A stretch of 63,931 nt of DNA, filler included, from Octopus bimaculoides (taxonomy: Eukaryota), in the NCBI RefSeq assembly GCF_001194135.2. It is 7 parts of 6 records of this genome, joined end to end, with 100 filler letters (N's around TTAATTAATTAA, not from the genome) between each part and the next. Parts side by side here need not be neighbours in the genome. Positions count along the whole stretch, not along the records: positions 48,405 to 58,073 come from NC_068981.1; 6 more parts are not named here. One strand, given 5' to 3'. Below the pieces are notes generated by a model. The model was not told the DNA's origin. It made no database searches and saw only the letters and a program-made list of their open reading frames with translations. A program made the translations under genes and the position numbers. Positions 5,329 to 57,997 of this stretch are shown one piece after another. How positions within the stretch are numbered: position 1 is the stretch's first letter; each line of letters opens with the position of its first letter.

Positions 5329-7218
5329 CGACTAATCTTATCTATCAGTGTTTTAAAACGAATTCATCCATTTTTTACCTCTTGTACAATTCTTTAAGTA
5401 TAATTTATTTGAGGTTTTATTTTTTTAGAGGACTGTCAAAATTGTTGAGATTTTCATTAGTAAAGATGCCGATAAAATGTTTATTTAGTGATATGTGGAG
5501 GAATGTTTCTTTATGTTACTATGACAACCGATTCAACTAAGACACAAGTGTCTTTTAAAGAGACCCTTTATTGAGGAAATATTTTATGAAGGAAAAAAAG
5601 TTTAGTTTGACTTGTCAGGAAAATATACTGATGTTATATCGGATTGTTATAAATAGACGATTGATTATAATTGGATCAACTCAGTAGGTTGTTATCCTAG
5701 CATTCCTCTTATTATAGAATACTTGGGAAATATTTCACTTAGACATCGCAAGAAGATGAATAAGAAATATATTGACAATAATATATAATTTTGTTTCCAA
5801 TCCGGACATGTTGTATGTCACTGAAACAAATAGTTTTAGCGGTTTATTTCATTTCTAGCTTCTCCCGATCATGGGGCTCTACAGCCTGATTTGTTAGTTG
5901 TGACTCACTTTAGAAATATAACCTGGTTTATAAATCATAATTGACAGCCTGTGTATTTTAGTTTATATATTCTGTATTTAGCGAGACTTCAGGATTATTT
6001 GCCATAAACCAATTACTAACACATATGGCACATTTATTTCAACAAATCTTTAACCATTCTCAACAATAAATTCATCATTTTCGAATACATTTCCAAAAAT
6101 ATGTCATCGGCAGCAATGAACTTTCCCAAACAAATCCCTAGCAGACACCTTGCTCAAATTTCATGTAAAAGAGAAAAAAAAAATGTTGAACTCAAAAGAA
6201 GACAAGTCAAATCATTATTCTTTCCTTTTAAACTTAAAAGTATTTTTCACTCACAATCTCTGCTCCCCCCACCAATCCAACATCTTTACAGACCAATACA
6301 TTTGCTGCTTTTAATTGATATAAAATACATAAAACGTTAATTTTAATATTTTGGTGAATATTTCAGTTTTTCAATAAGAAAAAAAACATTTAATCTGTTG
6401 CTGTTTAGTAATTAGTAAAATATTTGTTTTGGGAGATGAAAAAATATTAAACCAATTAACCACATAAATCTCTTAAAAAGTTATCACGTGTTCTGACCAA
6501 TTAATTATAGTTATTGTCTTAATATACACAATAAATATATTCCTTAACCGACTTCTATTCAATCAATTAGACAAATCAGCATAGTACATTTTTCAGATTT
6601 AGCCAAGCTGAAGAAAAAGAACTTGATTCAGGATTCAAAGACAATTTTGGCACCGGTATCATGTCTGTAGCGAATTAAATGCACCAAATGTGTTTGTCGA
6701 TCAAGGCTTTGATTTGTTAGTAATAGTTTAGAAAATTATATCTGTTCAGTCATGTTGGTGACTTTTGCTTTAAAAAGAAGACATTTTTCTAAAGACAAGT
6801 TTAATCGACATTTAAAAAAATCAATACTTGATATTACATTATACGTTATGTTGTTTTATTCCCTTGCGTATTTGTATTCAAACCGTAATAGCTTAGTTCT
6901 TCCAAGGCACGGGCCCATCGGGTGTTTTCGAACAAATAATAGTAAAAGATCATTAGATTAAACACGTCCAATTTTGTTAATTAAGTAATTATCCTGTGAA
7001 TATCTAAAATCGATATATATGACATTTTTAACCTTGTAGTTCTTTTTGGGTTTGTAACAAGATAAGGAAGCTGCAGAATAAATAATATTAATGGTTTTAA
7101 GGAATAAAATAAAGACTAAAGAGATTTTATGACAGAATCTGAAAATATTAGGCCAGAGTTCAAGTAAACCTGGAATAAAATGTGTTCTATGGTGACTGTA
7201 CACTTATTTACTTTGTAG

Positions 7219-13210: not shown

Positions 13211-14721
13211 AGACTAAAATTCCTCTGAGAATCAAGCAAATACAACTACCGATGCCGATCTGTAGAATATACACATTGTAAAGTATATATTAGGAGCAAC
13301 ACTTATTTACTCCAAATTATCTCAGGTTTGGTATTATTTTCTTGTTCAATTCTGTATATTTTATGAAATGTGGACAACAGAGCAGAATTAGAAAGTATAA
13401 ACGCTTCAAATGTTGAACTAATTGCATCACTGACAGAGTCTCGAAACGTCAGTCAGTTTTTAATAGTCTAGGCATCTTACTGAATTGTACTCAGCAACAT
13501 ACAGGAGATTTTAAAACAGAGCGTACATTATTGTAAAACACAATTTTGTCATGCAGAATCGTCGCTACCAAATAAACCTCGTCCTCCCACTCTTTCTCAC
13601 TCACTAGACACATACACATACACGCACACAGACACATACGGAGACAGACGCACACAAACACACACACACATACAAACACGCGCGCGTGCGTAAACACTCA
13701 CATAATTGTTGTGTAATCATTATAAACCATATCCAAGGAAATTACGATCTCAATTGATAACATAGCCTTAAACTCCAATACTTATCACAATACATAAATC
13801 CACTACAAAGAAACTTAATTACACGAATGATAATATTTATACTATCGAGACAACTTTTTAAGCAGATTAAATTATAATTTATGCATATGAAGGTTATGTT
13901 ATCTTGCTTATATATGTCAATATATTATGCATATTCACAGACCTATACAAACGTGCATACACATGGACACACACATATACATGCACATCTGTCTATTAGA
14001 GCAAATGTTAAATGAATGAATCTTACTGTAAAATAACTTTTATGATGAAAGAACACCAAACTCGGTTTTTAAGGATTCTACGAAAAATATATGCATTTGA
14101 TTTAATAATTCATGTGTCAGTTGGTCAGCATTTCACTATCAAACTACCCATAGATTAATCAACTTAAGCAATCATTAGTAATTTGATGTCAAAAAAATAC
14201 AAAAATAACCGAATTATCGCTTCAGGTGTAAAGGGAAACAGCGTCGACGATAAATTGGATCAACGTTTCATTGTTACTTGACTGACTTACATAATTGCCA
14301 GAGCTGACATGATGGAGAATACATGACTTTCTGGCAACATATGGGTTGATTTAAAAATATATTGATTCTATTAAAAATTTCCATTCAACTCGAGTTAGAG
14401 CGATAATAGGAAAATAAGCGAAATTTGATCAAATTCTTTAATGTGATTGGTGCTAATTTTGCCTAATTTACTTTCGTCATTATTAGTTCAGCTACCTTCA
14501 TACCACCTGACAGAATATGTGAACACAAAGAAAAAGCCAACAAAAAATATTGAAGAAGTAATTCTCATTTCAACTAAATTAAAGTAAAACCACTGATTCT
14601 ATTCTCAATCTTGCTGCATCGTCACCATTGTTTCTGAAGGCACCGAACAGAATGCACACATATACACATACAGCCAGACACTCACTATCATACACAGGCA
14701 TGTATGCACATGCATATGCCA

Positions 14722-49169: not shown

Positions 49170-50200
49170 ACAAAAAAATTTGGTTAAAAACATGTCACTT
49201 AGAATCTCTAAATTATCTGCTAATATTAATGTTTTCAATAATGATGCTGATTTCTATAAGCCGTCCTTATATAAGGCAGGATATAAGGAGCAAATTAAGT
49301 ATTATAACCCTCTTGATCCTGATTTAACCTCTAATAATCTGGTTGATAGTAGTTATACTAATAAGAACAATAATAATAATAATATTCATAATGAATGTTT
49401 CTCCTGTAGATAATAAAACAGATAATAACCCCTTATATCAAAATAGCCAAAGACCTAATTTTGGAAAATTTAAGAATAAAGTATAAGAGAGGTAACTATA
49501 CTTCCCCACTCTTTCTGTGAAAATAGAAAAAACTTCAGGTTTTTTTAATGAGAAATCTCCCTATAAATTGCATGACCCTGGTAAAACTATTTGGTTTATT
49601 ATTCCATATGGAAAACAAGTTAAAAGTAACATTCCTTACCTATTTCTTCAAACCATCAAAAGGAACTTCCCACAAAATTCCAGGTACCACTCCATTCTTA
49701 ACACACATCGTATCCGAATTGATTTCTCTAACACCAATAACCTCCTACAAATTATATCCTTGCATAACAACTATATTCTTAACAGTACAAGGGTTTCACT
49801 TAATAACTGTAATAACAACAATAATAATAATAATGCTAATTTCTCCTTAAATAATAGTATCAATAATAATAGTCCTTGTAATTGTGATCCAAACAAAATT
49901 TGCAGAATTAAAAGTGTTGTTTATCAATGTAAAATTTCTGCAGAATCTAAAGAATATTTTTATATTGGCATTTCATCCACAGAATTAAAAAAAAACAAGT
50001 TGCTAACCATCTTTCTACATTTAAATATATTCATAAACGTAATACTACAGGTCTTAGTAAACTAATTTGGCATCTCAAAGACTGTAATAAATAATTTTCT
50101 TTGGATTGGAAAATTTTGTCAAGTTTGTTTCCCTATGATAAAGGGAAATCTTTCTGCTCTCTTTGTATGGATGAACAAATATTTTTCCTTTTTTCCAAGC
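49170..50200 (+). mobile_element. Penelope-like element 3' half (RT thumb, Asn-rich linker, GIY-YIG)
   Basis: LRISKLSANINVFN..YKAGYKEQIKY, IWFIIPYGKQVKSNI..FP, CNC..CRIKSVVYQCKI..FYIGISST, WKIL..FCSLCMDE. Confidence 0.85.
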
Positions 50201-50935: not shown

Positions 50936-51354
50936 NNNNNNNNNNNNNNNNNNNNNNNNNNNNNNNNNNNNNNNNNNNNNNNNNNNNNNNNNNNNNNNNN
51001 NNNNNNNNNNNNNNNNNNNNNNNNNNNNNNNNNNNNNNNNNNNNNNNNNNNNNNNNNNNNNNNNNNNNNNNNNNNNNNNNNNNNNNNNNNNNNNNNNNNN
51101 NNNNNNNNNNNNNNNNNNNNNNNNNNNNNNNNNNNNNNNNNNNNNNNNNNNNNNNNNNNNNNNNNNNNNNNNNNNNNNNNNNNNNNNNNNNNNNNNNNNN
51201 NNNNNNNNNNNNNNNNNNNNNNNNNNNNNNNNNNNNNNNNNNNNNNNNNNNNNNNNNNNNNNNNNNNNNNNNNNNNNNNNNNNNNNNNNNNNNNNNNNNN
51301 NNNNNNNNNNNNNNNNNNNNNNTATATATACATACATACATATATATGCATATA

Positions 51355-52139: not shown

Positions 52140-52835
52140 TACTAGGGGAAGTCAGAAAATATCTGCACCTTCATCAAAACCTTCTTTAGGTTGGCCACAC
52201 TGCCTTCAGCACTCGTATGTTGAAAGGCAGTAAGTACTCTTGTGGTTACGTAACTGAGATTTGATCCTGATTACTCCAGTTTTCTTTCTTGTGTTAGAGA
52301 GTAAACAGCACTGCTCTGCTGGCAGTGTGCACTAAGGAAGAATAGAGGTCACTGATCCGATTTCTCTGGTCTGAAGTTATGTTAGGGGCTGAAATTCAAT
52401 GCAAGCCTTCAGTACAATATGGGGACAGTACTCTACCATGTAGAAGCGTGTTTCAGTAGATTGAAAAGGTTAAACATGGCTGGACAAGAGTGAAGCTTGG
52501 AAAGGGAGCAAGAGGCCTATCAATCTCCACCATTGATGAGAGATAGTTCTGTGAAAATTAGTCAATGTTCTGCATATGAAATCATTCACAACAAACTTCG
52601 CTTCTGTAAAGCCTGTGTGAGGTGGGTTCCAAAAGAGCTTCCTGAGGTGCATAAGCACAATTGTGTGGAGATCTGTCAACACTTATTTAACCGCTACAAC
52701 AATGAAGGTGAAGCTTGTTTGGTGAGAATTGTGACAGAAGAGACATGGGTTCATCACTGGGTCAGACTTCAAATGACAGAGGATGGACTGGAAACATCTG
52801 GAATCACCAGTGAAAAATAAAATTTAAAGTACCAA
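52140..52835 (+). mobile_element. Mariner transposase 5' remnant
   Basis: TIR-like tactaggggaagtcagaaaatatctgcac; CTKEE*RSLIRFLWSE, AYEIIHNKLRFCKACVRWVPKEL, RIVTEETWVHH; truncated at a SINE. Confidence 0.85.
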
Positions 52836-52837
52836 CC

Positions 52838-53125
52838 AAGTACTGGGGTCAATGTAATTGACTTTCCCACTTCCTTCAAAATTATTGGCCTAGTGCCAAA
52901 ATTAGATTATTATAGTGAGCCAGCAAAATTGTTGCCATGCTGGACAAAGGGATTAGTGGCATTTCTTCTAGTTTTATGTTCAGAGTTCAAATTTCACCAA
53001 AGTTGACTTTGCATTTCATCCTTTTGTGGTTGATAAAATAAGTACCAGTCAAATACTGGGGTTGATATAATTGACTCAGCTATTCCCACCCTAAAATTTC
53101 AGGTTTTGTACCTATAGTAGAAAGA
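52838..53125 (+). mobile_element. SINE family B, tail fragment plus near full-length copy in tandem
   Basis: tactggggtcaatgtaattgact occurs twice; gagttcaaatttcacc..ctttgcatttcatcc..gataaaataagtaccag. Confidence 0.75.
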
Positions 53126-53626
53126 CTCACTATTATATGAATGCATGCATGTGCCCCCCACCCCCACCACCACCACACAAATATACACACAGGAACAAAG
53201 TGTGTGTGTAATAAAATAAACTGAAAGGTTCTTAATATGGATATCTAAAGTCTGATTTATTTGTAAATAAAATTTGAAAGAAAATGAATACATAAGATAC
53301 TAACGTCATGGTAATTATAATTCTTTCACTTCTTTCTGTTTGTTGTTTTAGCCTCAGTCAAAATTTTATAAATCATACTATCTAATACTAACTATGGTGC
53401 ACATGCATGTGTAACTAAATACGCAGGTTATTTGTTGTTCTGCTTTTAACATAATCTTACCTTTAAAGTTAAACATAACCAATCATCTTAGCTTCAAACT
53501 CTGCCTACTGCAAACATTTACATTCCTTATGCTCTCTGTCAGTGTAAAAGGTAAATCACAACTTGAAATTAGAAATAGTTTTCTCAGAATTTCTTGAGGA
53601 TTCATGGAAATACATATTATCTCAAG

Positions 53627-53634
53627 TATAAAAG
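53627..53634 (+). promoter_or_regulatory. Candidate TATA box of the sushi gene
   Basis: TATAAAAG, 114 nt upstream of the ATG at 53741; position fits a short 5' UTR. Confidence 0.5.
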
Positions 53635-53740
53635 GCTCTCTAAACAGCCACTGAAAATATAAGTAACTTGCAAGTATACTTTAAACACAACTATCTTCTA
53701 GTCTTTCTTTCACAAAGTTGCCACCATCAAAATTGAAAGA

Positions 53741-55207
53741 ATGATATTCAAGATTTTGTATTTCCTTTTAATTATCATATTAGTTGTGAAGAGTGAAAAT
53801 ATAATCAATAATGCTATGAAAAATATTCTATTGGATTATAATATCTCCACTTCAACTGAAAACTTTTCTCCGTGGTTTTTTAAACAAATGGTAGATATCC
53901 TAAACTGTGATTCTTTACCAAAATTAAACAACAGTCAAATACAGTTTGTTTTGAAATGGAATGAAGAAAAGATATATCTGGAACAAACTTGCGATCGATA
54001 TTTTGAAGCAAGCCAAAAGAATACGACTGATATTGTTTGTCTGAATGGTAAATGGAGATATGAAGATAAAAAATGTAAGTTAATAACTTGCCCAACTTTT
54101 CATAAGCCTGCTCACAGTAACATGACAAATGTTTCATACACATATAAATCTGTTATTTACTTTTCCTGCTTTCCTGGTTACTTTTTGCAAGGAAACCGTT
54201 CAATACGCTGTGAAGAAACGAAACAGTGGTCATCTCCCCCACCAGTTTGTAAACTTGTTACATGTATCCCACCTCATACACCAAAACATGCCAATGTGTC
54301 CACTACAAAAGAAGTTGAAGTTAACAAAACAATTCATTTCAATTGTTTGGAACCATATTCATTGAAAGGTAAATCAGTATTAACTTGTCTTGAAGATGGT
54401 GATTGGAGCTTTCCAACACCCGTTTGCACTTGGAAATGTTTAGTGCCCAAAATAGCTGGGAGAGTGACAACTCTCTTGCAAAATAAAGTTTTAAAACCAA
54501 AAACATTAATTCGTAGTGGAAAAAAAGTGTTATATTCTTGTAAACAGCCTTTCCTTCCAGTAGCATTCGGAGTCATTCAATGTTTCTCTGGTAAATGGCA
54601 TCCAGATATTCAGTGTAAAAAGACATGTAAAATTGAGAGAGTAAAGAAATTAAACTATACTTTATCACATAATTTTACAGTAATTGAATATTATTGTCCA
54701 GCAGGAGAAACATTATTAGGGGACTCTAAAAGAACCTGTTTAGAAAACGGAACCTGGAGTAGCAAACTTCCAGTTTGTGTAAAAAAATGTCACCTGTTAC
54801 CTAACTTAGGCATTTATAGCTACCGAAATTCAGACAACTTACAATACCTTCCATTCGGAAGCTCAGTTCCAGAAAACACTAATATAACATATTCATGTCA
54901 GCAAAATTACTCAAAGAAAACAAAGAATGTGAGGTGTTCAGATGGTACATTGACTCCAGTACCACATTGCTCAGACAAAAGATTTTATGTAGAGAGCAAA
55001 AATCTTCGATTCAAAAATCAATCAACTTATTATGTTTGTAAAGATAATTATTCTTGCAATTTTTTTGGTTACCGTGATTACGGTAGCTGTGTCCGAACTT
55101 CATGTTCTTATAACAAGTGTGTTAGTATCAGTGTTGACAAAGCATCAAAGCTGTATATTAAGGCATACCATGACTATTGCTGCATTATTAGGTGTCATGA
55201 GAACTAA
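53741..55207 (+). CDS. Secreted six-sushi (CCP/SCR) domain glycoprotein with Cys-rich C-terminal domain, single coding exon, 488 aa
   Basis: Uninterrupted 1467-nt ORF; in-frame TAG at 53699-53701 upstream; A at -3 of the ATG. Hydrophobic N-terminus MIFKILYFLLIIILVVKS (signal peptide). Six 4-Cys modules at aa 56-112, 117-170, 175-229, 233-292, 296-346, 350-410; modules 1-5 have the conserved Trp before the last Cys (e.g. FSCFPGYFLQGNRSIRCEETKQWSSPPPVC) and module 6 lacks it. 16 N-x-S/T sequons; no TM or GPI-like tail. Confidence 0.93.
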   Translation: MIFKILYFLLIIILVVKSENIINNAMKNILLDYNISTSTENFSPWFFKQMVDILNCDSLPKLNNSQIQFVLKWNEEKIYLEQTCDRYFEASQKNTTDIVCLNGKWRYEDKKCKLITCPTFHKPAHSNMTNVSYTYKSVIYFSCFPGYFLQGNRSIRCEETKQWSSPPPVCKLVTCIPPHTPKHANVSTTKEVEVNKTIHFNCLEPYSLKGKSVLTCLEDGDWSFPTPVCTWKCLVPKIAGRVTTLLQNKVLKPKTLIRSGKKVLYSCKQPFLPVAFGVIQCFSGKWHPDIQCKKTCKIERVKKLNYTLSHNFTVIEYYCPAGETLLGDSKRTCLENGTWSSKLPVCVKKCHLLPNLGIYSYRNSDNLQYLPFGSSVPENTNITYSCQQNYSKKTKNVRCSDGTLTPVPHCSDKRFYVESKNLRFKNQSTYYVCKDNYSCNFFGYRDYGSCVRTSCSYNKCVSISVDKASKLYIKAYHDYCCIIRCHEN

Positions 55208-55331
55208 TATCAAACTATTTTCTACGTATATATAAAATTTACCAGCAATGCTGTTTTGATGCATGAGAGACAACCCTACTTTGTAATTTTAAGAGGTTTC
55301 TGATATTTATTTAATGATATCACTAACTGGT

Positions 55332-55337
55332 AATAAA
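55332..55337 (+). terminator. Candidate polyadenylation signal of the sushi gene
   Basis: First AATAAA after the stop codon (about 125 nt downstream), preceded by an ATTTATTTA AU-rich element. Confidence 0.5.
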
Positions 55338-56084
55338 GCAACTGAACATTTAAACAATTTTCAATCTTCAATATAAATCTATTCTTCTGTGTACTGTTGC
55401 AAGAGTATTCTTCTTCCAGTCAGACACATTTCATCACACTTTCTATTCTATCAGTGAGTGTATTTCAGGAACATTTCCAGGTGAAACATTTTTCAATGAG
55501 TAATTCAACACAGATGAATGGCATACCTACATATACACACATGTATAAATTCATTTAAGTATTAACCCTTGAGCTTAATGTATTAAGCTCATCCACAAGT
55601 ACAAATGAATTTTATACTTCTAATGACTAATTCTGTATGTGTCATTCCAATGACACCTCAAGAATCAATAACTGCATATATTATTGCATTATATATCAAG
55701 ATTGATGGGATTGTATTCAGATAAAACAACTGTAAATTGATGTAATAAAAAGACTTGTTCACTCCATTCTTCTTGTGTGTGGTGTGTGTGTGTGTGTGTG
55801 TGTGTGTACACACACAATAAATAAATTTTTTTATTAGTCACTATGAGGATATTTAGACCTCTTATAGGGATATTTTTAACCAAGAAACACTGGTTTAATA
55901 TATTGTAGTTTGAAGAGAGATGTCTTCAATGGATATATTATAAAATATCAAATATTATTATTAAGTTTGAAAATGGAGAGATTCAATGGATATGAATTAA
56001 TTTATTAATCATTTATCATCATTGCTTACGATTGTTTCATTTCACATCCAGTTTAAATTACAAAATATATATAAATATACGGAA

Positions 56085-57760
56085 ATGCCAGACCCGGGAA
56101 TTCACAGTGCACACCAAGGTAACACAGCAGAACAGGGACAACCTTAGAATCTCTGAGGCCATCCCCATACATTGGACCTAAGCTTAAAATCAGACCCTTA
56201 ATATCAGGAACTAATGGTCCTTTCTATAAGATTTCTTGGTTCCTCTCTAAACTCCTCAAGCCCTTACTACACACATTCCCCAGACACATCAGCAGCTCCC
56301 ACAAAATCTTCACAAGACTCAAAGATATCGATCCCTCCATACTTAAAACTAACAAATACCCTTTTAGTTTAGATGTAGTTTCCTCTCTACACCTCTGTAC
56401 CCGCTCTCCTGGCCAATGATATCCTCATAGACCACATCATGTCCTTATCTTACCCCACTTCTCCCTGTCCCCACCTCCCATATCATCTCTCCCTCCCTCC
56501 CTCCCCTTTAACCTCATCCTCCCCATCTTCCCCTTCATCTTCTCTCACCTCCCCATCCATCAACCTCCAGCTCTTCAGCCTCACATCCTCAAACATTTGA
56601 GAGTTACTAACCATTATAGTTGGTAACACCTACTTGCAATATAATGGTGTGATTTACAAACAGACTTTCGGCCTACCTATGGGATCTAGCCTTTTAGGCC
56701 TGCTGGCCATAAGCTAGAATGCACAGCACTCAACACTTGCTGCTCATGCATCTTCTTCTCCAGGTACATTGATGACATCCTTATCATCACATCCTCCAGG
56801 GAGAGGCCATTAATATACACCGGACCTTCAATAACACTGATATAAACATAAAATTCAAGATTGAACATCCAGACGAATCTGGAACTCTCTCTCTCTCTAC
56901 TCGACTTTCAACTCAAGATCACAGAGGAAGGCTCTATATTTACCAAATTCTACAGAAAAGCCGCTAATAGAAAACTTTTAATCCACTACCAATCAGCCTT
57001 ACCCACCAGAGCCAAAGCCGCATATGTGAGAAATGAGATTGCACGTATAAGCAACAATTGCAGCAACATGACTGACGAAGCCGTCAACATCAAACAGTTC
57101 CTCAGAGATCTAACCCTAAATGGCTACCCACCATCTTTAATTAAATAATGGTGCCTAAAGAACATGAAGGTCAGTAGACCTTGGAAGAACCCTCATACTT
57201 CCAAGTCCAGCACACGCTTCCTAAAGCTACTGCACTTTGATGACAGAACTACTGCAGCAATACAACACGCAGTCCACAGGGAAGGACTCAACATACAGAT
57301 AGTGCACACCGGCTCTTCCCTGAGTAAAGCTCTGTCCAAGAACAACACCTCTCACTACTCTGAGGAATGCACATTGTCGAAATGCCCCATCAATGACCCT
57401 GAATTGTGCAAGAGGACCTAATTTGTATATGAGATACATCTGTGGCAATTGTGGCACATCCTACATAGGAAGCACGACAAGAAAACTGCATATATGCATT
57501 AAGGAACACATACAGGCAGACACTTCCATGAAGAAACACCTATGGAATTGCCAGACCCGGGAATTCAGAGTGCACATCAAGGCAACACAGCGGAACAGAG
57601 GCAACCTTAGAATCTTTGAGGCCATCCTCATACACCAAAGGAAACCCAAGATCAACAACAGAAGAGAGTTACAGGAATCTAGCTGGCTGCTAGAGCAACA
57701 CCTTTCTGTGCACGTCCACTCCACACTTGCTGACACATACGCACGTCAGCAACATTTATC
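56085..57760 (+). mobile_element. Penelope-like element (RT plus GIY-YIG; tentatively Naiad-like), pseudogenised
   Basis: KIRPLISGTNGP..SLDVVS-LYTSVP, KQTFGLPMGS, RYIDD, LDFQL..FYRK..LNGYP, CTLSKCPI..C..CGNCGTSYIGSTTRKLH..KEH; stops, frameshifts and a pyrimidine-rich insertion at about 56445-56570. Confidence 0.92.
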
Positions 57761-57997
57761 TATTCCTCGAAATATTGAATACAAGATAAATCTACATTAC
57801 TTCACATATTTGCTTTCTTGTGATTTACCTTGCATTTACTTTGCATTGTTTTGGCATTCCCAAAATCCTTTATACGAATATATAATATATATATGTATAT
57901 ATACATAATAAAAATATATATAATATGCATAATATATATATAATATATATGTATATATATATGTATGTCTGTCTGTCTCTGTCTCTGTCTTTCTCTC

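Follow-up and report, generated by a model that had tools for sequence, protein, structure and literature searches.

The stretch of DNA analysed here (the window; 63,931 nt of Octopus bimaculoides sequence, joined from several parts) contains a gene with a single coding exon at 53741..55207 on the + strand. Its reading frame runs unbroken over 488 codons from an ATG start to a TAA stop, as an earlier sequence-only reading had claimed; at the local base composition, a run of this length would stay open by chance with a probability of 1.3e-15. The second-longest ORF in the piece encodes 182 aa when ORFs that merely cross an N gap are set aside. The CDS is identical to that of a gene called at CM046601.1:132139917-132141383 on an O. 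bimaculoides chromosome, the exact protein exists as an NCBI nr entry, and an Octopus vulgaris gene model is a co-member of its exact-protein cluster. The ORF, from here on the window gene, is a real O. bimaculoides gene that codes for a protein in a single exon and was publicly predicted before, as an ordinary RefSeq prediction.

The locus is embedded in octopus repeats and has a base composition like that of its AT-rich flanks. It is colinear with the locus of the ortholog in O. sinensis (92.5% over 5.2 kb), and the CDS shows 94.9% identity to O. sinensis compared with ∼93% for the flanks. A tblastn search within ±10 kb of the window gene found no arrestin-like neighbour, and synteny with such a neighbour is therefore seen solely in a fused O. 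vulgaris gene model. The flanking ORFs, suspected to be transposon remnants, gave zero matches in a Pfam scan at E ≤ 0.01. A mariner reading of these ORFs is weakly backed by a PDB search (E = 0.05–0.08).

The ortholog in O. sinensis carries the name "P-selectin-like". Selectins consist of a C-type lectin domain, an EGF domain, CCPs and a transmembrane segment. Pfam shows Sushi domains alone in the protein of the window gene, which has no hydrophobic segment beyond its signal peptide, and a selectin identity was therefore rejected. The signal peptide spans residues 1–18 (53741..53794, +) with a predicted cleavage site at VKS|EN; the call is heuristic, based on this site and the −3/−1 rule, and VKSEN is nearly invariant among family members. 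Since residues 1–19 form the only hydrophobic stretch, the protein is predicted to have a signal peptide and neither a transmembrane segment nor a GPI-type tail. The mature protein is basic (pI about 9) and contains 16 sequons, where 5.3 ± 2.0 are expected; this is an approximately 3-fold enrichment, and none of 5000 shuffles reached 16. From these features the protein is predicted to be secreted and heavily N-glycosylated.

The signal peptide is followed by an acidic, family-specific N-terminal segment of 37 residues (19–55; 53795..53905, +), in which W45 and Q49 are invariant. It is conserved in the family and a helix was modelled at residues 44–53 with low to moderate confidence. The C-terminal end (residues 411–488; 54971..55204, +) is a family-private Cys-rich tail of 78 residues with eight Cys residues in the motif VC..C.FFGYR..C..C..CV....CC...C. 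Neither of the two regions matches any family in a Pfam search. Structure models of the tail are of low confidence, and when it was modelled alone the mean pLDDT was 55, a level at which a fold search would say little. The sole match in a tail-only profile search was P0172, a fragment of another paralog with no recorded locus. The sequence-only reading was silent on both segments.

Between these two segments lie six CCP (sushi) modules. Of the 32 cysteines of the protein, eight lie in residues 411–488, and the other 24 show CCP spacing in six sets of four; a Trp precedes the fourth Cys in five of these six sets. Across the family, each of the 24 CCP cysteines is invariant or close to it. As a whole the protein matches the Pfam Sushi domain (PF00084) with 112 bits (E = 1.8e-32) in five stretches. 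Taken module by module, CCP2 (residues 117–170; 54089..54250, +; 46.4 bits, pLDDT 82–90), CCP3 (175–229; 54263..54427, +; 45.8 bits, pLDDT 77–87) and CCP5 (296–346; 54626..54778, +; 29.8 bits) score above the Pfam gathering cut-off of 20.7 bits; the first two are canonical, and CCP5 is the most conserved module of the family. Below the cut-off are CCP1 (56–112; 53906..54076, +; 18 bits over the full profile length, pLDDT 63–76), CCP4 (233–292; 54437..54616, +; 17.8 bits, pLDDT <50) and CCP6 (350–410; 54788..54970, +; 14.4 bits, pLDDT 79–87). CCP1 nevertheless has four invariant Cys residues plus W105, the four Cys residues of CCP6, which lacks the consensus Trp, are likewise all invariant, and CCP4 aligns to CCPs of CR1. 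As three modules score strongly and three weakly, a count of six CCPs is right, with three of them divergent.

Structure prediction agrees with this assignment for five of the six modules. In the AlphaFold (AF2) model CCP1, 2, 3, 5, and 6 are β modules with block-mean pLDDT values of 57–90, and the top Foldseek matches to the model are all multi-CCP structures (probability 1.00). By sequence, the best matches among solved structures are CR1, CR2, factor H, β2-glycoprotein I and MCP. CCP4 is very basic, with 10 K/R against 1 D/E (pI 9.97), and Lys-rich strings are found at residues 249–262 and 292–303. The net charge of this module is +9 in the Octopus lineage-A orthologs (see below) compared with 0 to +5 in other members. 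The architecture proposed in the sequence-only reading, i.e., a signal peptide without a membrane anchor, six tandem CCPs, 16 sequons and two Lys-rich patches, thus holds up, with the qualifications that the signal peptide call is heuristic and that the basic patches, on which its suggestion of polyanion binding depends, are strong only in the Octopus lineage-A orthologs.

The window gene is a member of a small and old family, intron-free in every gene inspected, whose members were detected by sequence searches only in the octopods Octopus and Argonauta. In a word-indexed search of 5.8 billion proteins, family members score at least 658 bits, whereas generic sushi proteins score at most 104 bits, in line with the lineage specificity that had been proposed. 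An exhaustive HMMER search with a full-length family profile found no colinear ∼490-aa protein outside the family among the best 150 of 7593 matches (≥345 bits), nearly all of which are giant multi-sushi proteins that would mask any distant squid or mollusc members. Orthologs and paralogs lie on chromosome-scale scaffolds in three genomes.

Seven genes were inspected, i.e., the window gene, its O. sinensis ortholog, P0002, P0003, and P0005 of O. bimaculoides, and P0008 and P0009 of Argonauta hians. All seven have a single coding exon, the CDS span being 3 × (aa + 1). The split between the window gene, its O. sinensis ortholog and P0008 on one side and the gene cluster and P0009 on the other has 99% bootstrap support. 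Lineages A and B were therefore separate before Octopus and Argonauta diverged. Lineage A, to which the window gene belongs, is represented by a single copy in each species within the collections searched. Lineage B forms a cluster on a second chromosome that has expanded to at least 4–5 copies and shows birth-and-death dynamics, including truncated copies. In neither genus do the two lineages share a chromosome or scaffold. Bivalve "P-selectin" multi-sushi expansions (PMC9484242) likewise reflect lineage-specific duplication of extracellular-domain genes, in a different lineage.

Similarity between the window gene and its lineage-B paralogs extends beyond the CDS. A proximal promoter block at 53553..53692 (+) is homologous to the regions upstream of the paralogs; in local alignments z was 8.3 against the region upstream of P0003 (a score reached by 0 of 200 shuffles), 3.8 against P0005 and 2.7 against P0002. 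The negative control region at −1250..−1000 showed no similarity between the window gene and the paralogs. The homology covers ∼140 nt, including a TATA box and ∼75 nt 5′ of it. The TATA box, TATAAAAG (53627..53634, +), is read directly 114 nt upstream of the ATG and is a putative promoter element; TATAAA is found 80–143 nt upstream of the ATG in all seven family genes. The 3′UTR, too, shares homology with that of the lineage-B paralogs. A candidate polyadenylation signal, AATAAA (55332..55337, +), lies 125 nt past the stop codon; it is kept in the O. sinensis ortholog and is not followed by an A-tract. The transcription start site, an intron-free 5′UTR and the poly(A) site of the window gene are placed by these motifs and are therefore putative.

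The sequence-only reading was right that an intact, intronless CDS encodes a secreted multi-CCP protein. It went on to interpret the gene as a retrocopy set against an intron-containing norm, and this part is not supported. Because the family is old, restricted to octopods and intronless throughout, the window gene is neither a recent retrogene nor a viral import, and an intronless multi-CCP gene is the ancestral state within the octopod family (seven of seven genes). The homology to lineage-B paralogs crosses the presumed transcript start, unlike what is expected of a retrocopy. Since paralogs on different chromosomes share promoter and 3′UTR homology, a recent independent retroposition at the window locus is excluded. 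The parent search that had been proposed yielded no intron-containing parent, either among the 5.8 billion proteins or among the best 150 of the 7593 exhaustive matches, the next-best proteins being the generic sushi proteins at ≤104 bits. No poly(A) remnant or target-site duplication was visible in 53000–53740 and 55208–56700, although such marks would be erased at this age (dS > 1 to Argonauta). With no intron-bearing parent, poly(A) remnant or viral relative found, and with homology from promoter to 3′UTR, the copies appear to have multiplied by duplication of DNA segments that included the promoter and UTRs.

Retroposition can thus only belong to the ancient and unprovable origin of the family founder. 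Under this version a multi-CCP parent with introns gave rise just once, before the Octopus–Argonauta split, to an intact retrocopy that was kept by selection and later multiplied by DNA duplication, a course of events that we regard as possible but would not favour. The CDS is indeed intronless family-wide, and the multi-CCP gene P0012 of the nemertean Tubulanus, a lophotrochozoan used as a partial control, has its exon borders at CCP borders. Molluscan nAChRs offer a precedent in a different protein family, with intronless genes that arose through retroposition followed by tandem duplication into arrays (PMC6896357); the octopod family has expanded little, and its founding by retroposition is no more than conjecture. 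No candidate parent is apparent, as generic sushi proteins stay at or below 104 bits and no colinear relative was found among the exhaustive matches of at least 345 bits. Neither a poly(A) tract nor a target-site duplication was visible at the window locus, paralogs on different chromosomes share promoter and 3′UTR homology, and other routes of intron loss or an ancestrally intron-poor gene would fit equally well.

Taken together, we consider it quite probable that the window gene is a single-exon gene for a secreted six-CCP glycoprotein, belonging to an octopod-only family with two ancient lineages that spread by DNA duplication. Most likely the protein binds ligands outside the cell as part of humoral or mucosal defence. 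In haemolymph or mucus the CCP rod would serve as an extracellular adaptor for proteins or glycans, and it might most plausibly recognise or regulate ligands of innate immunity, e.g., thioester proteins (C3/TEP), polyanions or the surfaces of microbes. The Cys-rich tail may join several copies into disulfide-linked oligomers or hold the protein in matrix or mucus. CCP proteins also include adhesion molecules, synapse organisers, coagulation proteins and cytokine receptors, and because the modules are generic binding units an immune role is one among several possibilities.

A literature search by accessions and RefSeq names of the family members found only a skin-mucus proteome of O. vulgaris, in which the lineage-B member A0A6P7TXA6 was detected with one peptide and one PSM (PMC10138644). 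The peptide residues of A0A6P7TXA6 are identical at 30 of 32 positions in P0006 and at 10 of 10 in P0010. This detection is the only protein-level hint for the family, and it concerns a paralog of the window gene. In haemocytes of the squid Euprymna scolopes, proteomics found C3 (EsC3) together with an uncharacterised protein with six sushi repeats (PMC3349304); this protein is known from a partial ORF of 398 aa and is likened to the octopod family by description only.

A more specific function would be that of a regulator of the cephalopod C3/thioester-protein system, i.e., a soluble counterpart to factor H or C4BP with affinity for deposited C3b-like fragments and host polyanions, possibly oligomerised through its tail in the manner of C4BP. 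We regard this as unlikely. The best sequence and fold matches are to CR1, CR2, factor H, β2-glycoprotein I, CD46, Crry and DAF, and like the RCA proteins (factor H, C4BP, CR1, CD46, DAF, and Crry), which are strings of CCPs, often soluble and glycosylated, the octopod protein is a soluble chain of several CCPs with basic patches. In factor H basic CCPs bind polyanions, and C4BP has a non-CCP oligomerisation region at its C-terminus. A cephalopod C3 exists alongside the squid six-sushi protein, and a paralog occurs in skin mucus. However, the similarity to RCA proteins is that of generic modules (∼20–30% identity per module) without orthology, fold matches have TM-scores ≤0.3 over the full length, the strongly basic CCP4 is not conserved family-wide, and CCP proteins have the other roles named above. 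The extracellular part of RCA proteins consists essentially of CCPs only, whereas the octopod protein adds the 37-residue N-terminal segment and the 78-residue tail, the latter unrelated to the tail of C4BP. RCA genes have roughly one CCP per exon, in contrast to the single exon found here, and no colinear relative outside octopods was seen in the word-indexed search or among the best 150 of 7593 exhaustive matches.

The top fold match, β2-glycoprotein I (apolipoprotein H; E = 7e-18, with a TM-score of only 0.30/0.42), is a short soluble CCP chain that attaches to anionic surfaces through a single aberrant module rich in Lys. CCP4 of the octopod protein is likewise aberrant, with a pI of about 10, although this basic character is not family-wide. 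β2-Glycoprotein I has five CCPs with the basic module last, whereas the octopod protein has six with the basic module fourth.

The window gene is under purifying but relaxed selection, in agreement with the earlier proposal that it is under selection. In the comparison with O. sinensis omega is 0.57 (below 1 at p = 0.027), and in that with Argonauta, where dS > 1, it is 0.30. By region, the tail (0.88) evolves fastest, CCP1 has a value of 0.84, and no region exceeds 1. The fairly high rate overall and in the tail, the birth-and-death dynamics and truncated copies of the cluster, and the lineage-restricted, secreted nature of the protein could also fit a fast-evolving secretion of reproductive tissue, egg coat, salivary gland or venom, shaped by selection through mating or prey. 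Such a role seems distinctly unlikely, as omega is nowhere above 1 and the sole proteomic sighting comes from skin mucus, not from a gland or gametes. A fuller scenario joins several of these elements, namely an octopod invention that acts as a soluble C3/TEP regulator or opsonic adaptor in haemolymph and skin mucus, has a new disulfide-linked oligomerisation domain in its tail, converges on C4BP and factor H, and goes back to one ancient retroposition followed by DNA duplication; as a whole we find it rather improbable.

The weak constraint between the closest species and the small difference between the CDS and its flanks would be compatible with a non-expressed or decaying pseudogene that is open by chance. 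This is very improbable, however, because the ORF is still open and unchanged in length in Argonauta, at dS > 1 and an omega of 0.30, omega is significantly below 1 even in the closest pair, none of the 24 CCP cysteines varies more than marginally, and conservation also covers the TATA box and AATAAA.

Some large DNA viruses typically carry multi-CCP genes without introns, and the poxvirus proteins VCP/SPICE and the herpesvirus CCP homologues resemble the octopod protein in being intronless, secreted and composed of CCPs. VCP and SPICE are among its PDB matches (E ∼1e-10 to 1e-11), but these viral proteins have four CCPs, lie in viral genomes and match far less well than cellular CCP proteins. 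Horizontal gain, which had been proposed as a less likely source, here from a virus of the VCP or CCPH type, is rejected together with contamination or an assembly artefact as extremely improbable, given the lack of any tblastn-confirmed relative in 2.9 million viral contigs, the flank-like base composition, the octopus repeats and O. sinensis colinearity of the locus, the chromosome-scale scaffolds that carry its relatives, and the O. vulgaris gene model in its exact-protein cluster.

The window gene as such is an ordinary predicted gene that was in RefSeq beforehand. What it adds is a family that shows, on a small and tidy scale, how a set of secreted proteins can be old, free of introns, confined to one taxon and equipped with a private Cys-rich domain. 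The lack of introns is a trait of this family at least as old as the Octopus–Argonauta split, and not a mark of recent retroposition or transfer. In the literature searched we found no regulator of cephalopod complement-like immunity. Should the family act on C3/thioester proteins or on mucus-borne microbes, it would provide a first handle on how this immunity is controlled.

The open reading frame at window 53741–55207 (+) runs unbroken from ATG to TAA over 488 codons, as the sequence-only reading had claimed. At the base composition of this piece a stop is expected about every 15 codons and the probability of 488 open codons is 1.3e-15; the next-longest ORF in the piece, leaving out those spanning the N gap, has 182 aa. 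Existing annotation of CM046601.1 (assembly GCA_001194135.2) has an identical gene at 132,139,917-132,141,383, and the protein is already present in NCBI nr. Its O. sinensis ortholog XP_029638524.1 (490 aa, 90% identity) is labelled 'P-selectin-like'.

Pfam assigned Sushi (PF00084) to five stretches of the window protein (112 bits, E=1.8e-32). It has 32 cysteines, of which 24 fall into six CCP-spaced groups of four and 8 into residues 411–488. This spacing bears out the proposed six tandem modules (all +), although three of them lie just under the Pfam cut-off of 20.7 bits when scored singly: CCP1 (residues 56–112, 18 bits), CCP4 (233–292, 18 bits) and CCP6 (350–410, 14 bits). CCP2 (117–170, 46 bits), CCP3 (175–229, 46 bits) and CCP5 (296–346, 30 bits) are canonical, and the consensus Trp is present in 5/6 modules. 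The earlier reading overlooked an N-terminal segment (residues 19–55) and the 8-Cys tail (411–488), neither of which matched a Pfam family.

AlphaFold2, run on a family alignment of 10 sequences, modelled CCP1, 2, 3, 5, and 6 as beta modules (block-mean pLDDT 57–90), with CCP4 and the tail below 50. A Foldseek search with this model returned multi-CCP proteins exclusively, with beta2-glycoprotein I on top, and the closest solved structures are CR1, CR2, factor H, beta2-glycoprotein I and CD46. Residues 1–19 are the sole hydrophobic stretch and thus represent a signal peptide (a heuristic call, with predicted cleavage between VKS and EN), with no transmembrane or GPI-type anchor, again as proposed. 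The mature protein has a pI of 9.06 and a net charge of +26. All 16 reported sequons were recovered, an approximately threefold enrichment (5.3 ± 2.0 expected; 16 reached in 0/5000 shuffles), of which only five or six positions are kept family-wide.

When 5.8 billion proteins were searched with single sequences and with profiles, full-length relatives (483–495 aa) came only from Argonauta hians, O. bimaculoides and O. sinensis, so the protein is lineage-restricted as suggested. Family members share 51–62% identity with the window protein and score at least 658 bits, whereas generic sushi proteins do not exceed 104 bits; an exhaustive HMMER search, in which giant multi-sushi proteins swamped the matches, gave no colinear relative outside the family scoring 345 bits or more. 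The tail motif VC..C.FFGYR..C..C..CV....CC...C is common to the family, and since a tail-only profile retrieved nothing beyond a fragment of another paralog, the tail is family-private. Pfam and hydrophobicity analysis revealed no lectin, EGF, CUB, VWA or TM domains, and the RefSeq labels 'P-selectin-like', 'SVEP1', 'CSMD3-like' and 'complement factor H-like' are generic best-hit names. The protein clearly belongs to the CCP superfamily. Sequence comparison does not place it in the RCA family, to which it has no orthology, and it carries extra non-CCP parts.

Several database models of the family are annotation artefacts. Two older O. bimaculoides models of the window protein (P0022 and P0021) start inside the protein, at Met50 or Met128, and so miss the signal peptide. 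The O. vulgaris model P0017 (CAI9716043.1), which covers the ortholog in that species, lacks the start and last ∼29 residues and is fused to a downstream arrestin-domain gene, which explains the unrelated arrestin-like proteins in the 90% cluster that holds an O. vulgaris model together with the exact window protein. The family model P0010 seems to be a chimera that joins two adjoining family copies.

The intronless structure also stands, and is shared by the family. In 7/7 genes with DNA fetched, the annotated CDS measures 3 × (aa+1) nt from end to end and its translation gives the protein, so each gene has one coding exon; the seven are the window gene, its O. sinensis ortholog, P0008 and P0009 of Argonauta, and P0002, P0005 and P0003 of O. 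bimaculoides. P0002, P0005 and P0003 form a cluster on CM046603.1 at ∼98.09, ∼98.29 and ∼98.36 Mb, respectively. Unrooted neighbour-joining separated the window gene, its O. sinensis ortholog and P0008 (lineage A) from this cluster and P0009 (lineage B) with 99% bootstrap. Since the two lineages also lie on separate chromosomes or scaffolds in both genera, the window-lineage duplication is older than the Octopus–Argonauta divergence (dS of the window gene against Argonauta ∼1.1, saturated).

Every gene (7/7) has a TATAAA 80–143 nt 5′ of the ATG; for the window gene the TATA box read from the sequence is TATAAAAG (window 53627–53634, +). Upstream, the window gene shares ∼140 nt of homology with the lineage-B paralogs, across the TATA box and sequence 5′ of it (z = 8.3 against P0003, 0/200 shuffles; 3.8 against P0005; 2.7 against P0002), and the 3′UTR resembles that of P0002 (z = 11.5), whereas the control segment −1250..−1000 showed no similarity to these paralogs. 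An AATAAA at window 55332–55337 (+), 125 nt after the stop, is kept in O. sinensis. These findings show that the family copies multiplied through duplication of the DNA itself, with promoter and UTRs copied along.

A single ancient retroposition that made the family founder is a reasonable, if tentative, conjecture, because exon borders coincide with CCP borders in a nemertean multi-CCP gene used as control, and because molluscs are known to form intronless families via retroposition and then tandem duplication (PMC6896357). No parent gene is identifiable. A recent retrogene at this locus is not supported, given the age of the split and the promoter and 3′UTR homology; no A-tract or target-site duplication is visible around the window gene. 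Horizontal acquisition, the earlier reading's less likely option, is not supported either; contamination and recent transfer are excluded by colinearity with the O. sinensis locus (92.5% over 5.2 kb) and by an ORF base composition matching the AT-rich flanks, and a scan of 2.9 million viral contigs gave no relative.

Two partial copies in the CM046603.1 cluster indicate birth-and-death turnover. One is an inverted fragment (L002:5351-6135, −) ∼4 kb upstream of P0002 that matches residues 1–91 and 297–486 and has lost the CCPs in between. The second (L007:12508-12823, +), ∼1 kb downstream of P0005, duplicates CCP6 and the tail.

An ORF at window 52497–52820 (+) resembles the mid-part of a mariner-type transposase (weak SETMAR and Mos1 matches, E=0.05–0.08; no Pfam match) and is probably a decayed DNA-transposon remnant ∼1 kb upstream of the window gene. 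Several ORFs at 56090–57908 (+) and 49517–50065 (+) carry motifs that may resemble Penelope-like reverse transcriptase and GIY-YIG endonuclease; they had no Pfam match at E≤0.01 and sit in a strongly C-skewed, GC-richer block (GC 0.42–0.46, GC skew down to −0.59). A 387-N assembly gap (50936–51322) between TA/CA-rich low-complexity sequence accounts for spurious long 'ORFs' across it. A repeat of ∼180 bp, apparently an octopus element of SINE-like or satellite-like type, flanks the window gene on both sides (L001:3432-3613 and 14130-14333), with many copies in both orientations at 70–84% identity in the O. sinensis locus (L005, e.g., 1715-2610 and 6543-6739).

Selection on the protein, also proposed earlier, is purifying. 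Against O. sinensis, dS is 0.081, dN 0.046 and omega 0.57 (Fisher test for omega<1, p=0.027), and CDS identity is 94.9% compared with ∼93% for the flanks. Omega is ∼0.4 against the paralogs and 0.30 against Argonauta. Regionally, against O. sinensis, it is lowest in CCP2 (0.17), CCP4 (0.27) and CCP5 (0.37), while CCP1 (0.84) and the tail (0.88) have the highest values; it is above 1 in no region. Across the family, the 24 CCP cysteines show little or no variation. On these values the gene is functional, under constraint that is relaxed yet real, and a pseudogene is rejected by omega<1 and the near-invariant cysteines. The O. sinensis ortholog (L005:10001-11473) has an odd 33rd cysteine (Ser126→Cys in CCP2) and a Ser in place of the otherwise family-invariant Trp73 of CCP1, which may reflect either genuine change in that lineage or errors in sequencing.

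From its architecture, the product is predicted to be a secreted, glycosylated, basic CCP rod with a disulfide-rich tail. The Lys-rich patches noted earlier are present. Among the proteins compared, however, CCP4 reaches its extreme charge (+9) only in the two lineage-A orthologs from Octopus (+5 in Argonauta lineage A, 0 to +5 in lineage B); if the protein does bind polyanions, this would be a trait special to lineage A. The sole protein-level evidence for the family is a lineage-B paralog in the O. vulgaris skin-mucus proteome, 'complement factor H-like' A0A6P7TXA6 (1 peptide, 1 PSM, 3% coverage; PMC10138644), whose in-silico peptides match P0006 at 30/32 residues and P0010 at 10/10. C3 is present in cephalopods, and Euprymna scolopes haemocytes contain an uncharacterised six-sushi protein (partial ORF 398 aa, 9 peptides) alongside EsC3 (PMC3349304), which may be a decapodiform counterpart of this family's proteins.

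Architecture, mucus paralog, cephalopod C3 and the squid haemocyte protein together lead us to favour a role in defence, humoral or mucosal, as a binding or adaptor protein outside the cell. Factor-H/C4BP-like action on C3/TEP would be an unlikely, minority possibility, and a reproductive or glandular role seems slightly less probable still. The window gene, predicted and uncharacterised, belongs to a six-CCP family that is restricted to octopods and has been intronless since ancient times. The gene itself is ordinary and would not surprise a specialist, but with its family, the private tail and the sighting in mucus it is a reasonable candidate to follow up in cephalopod immunity.
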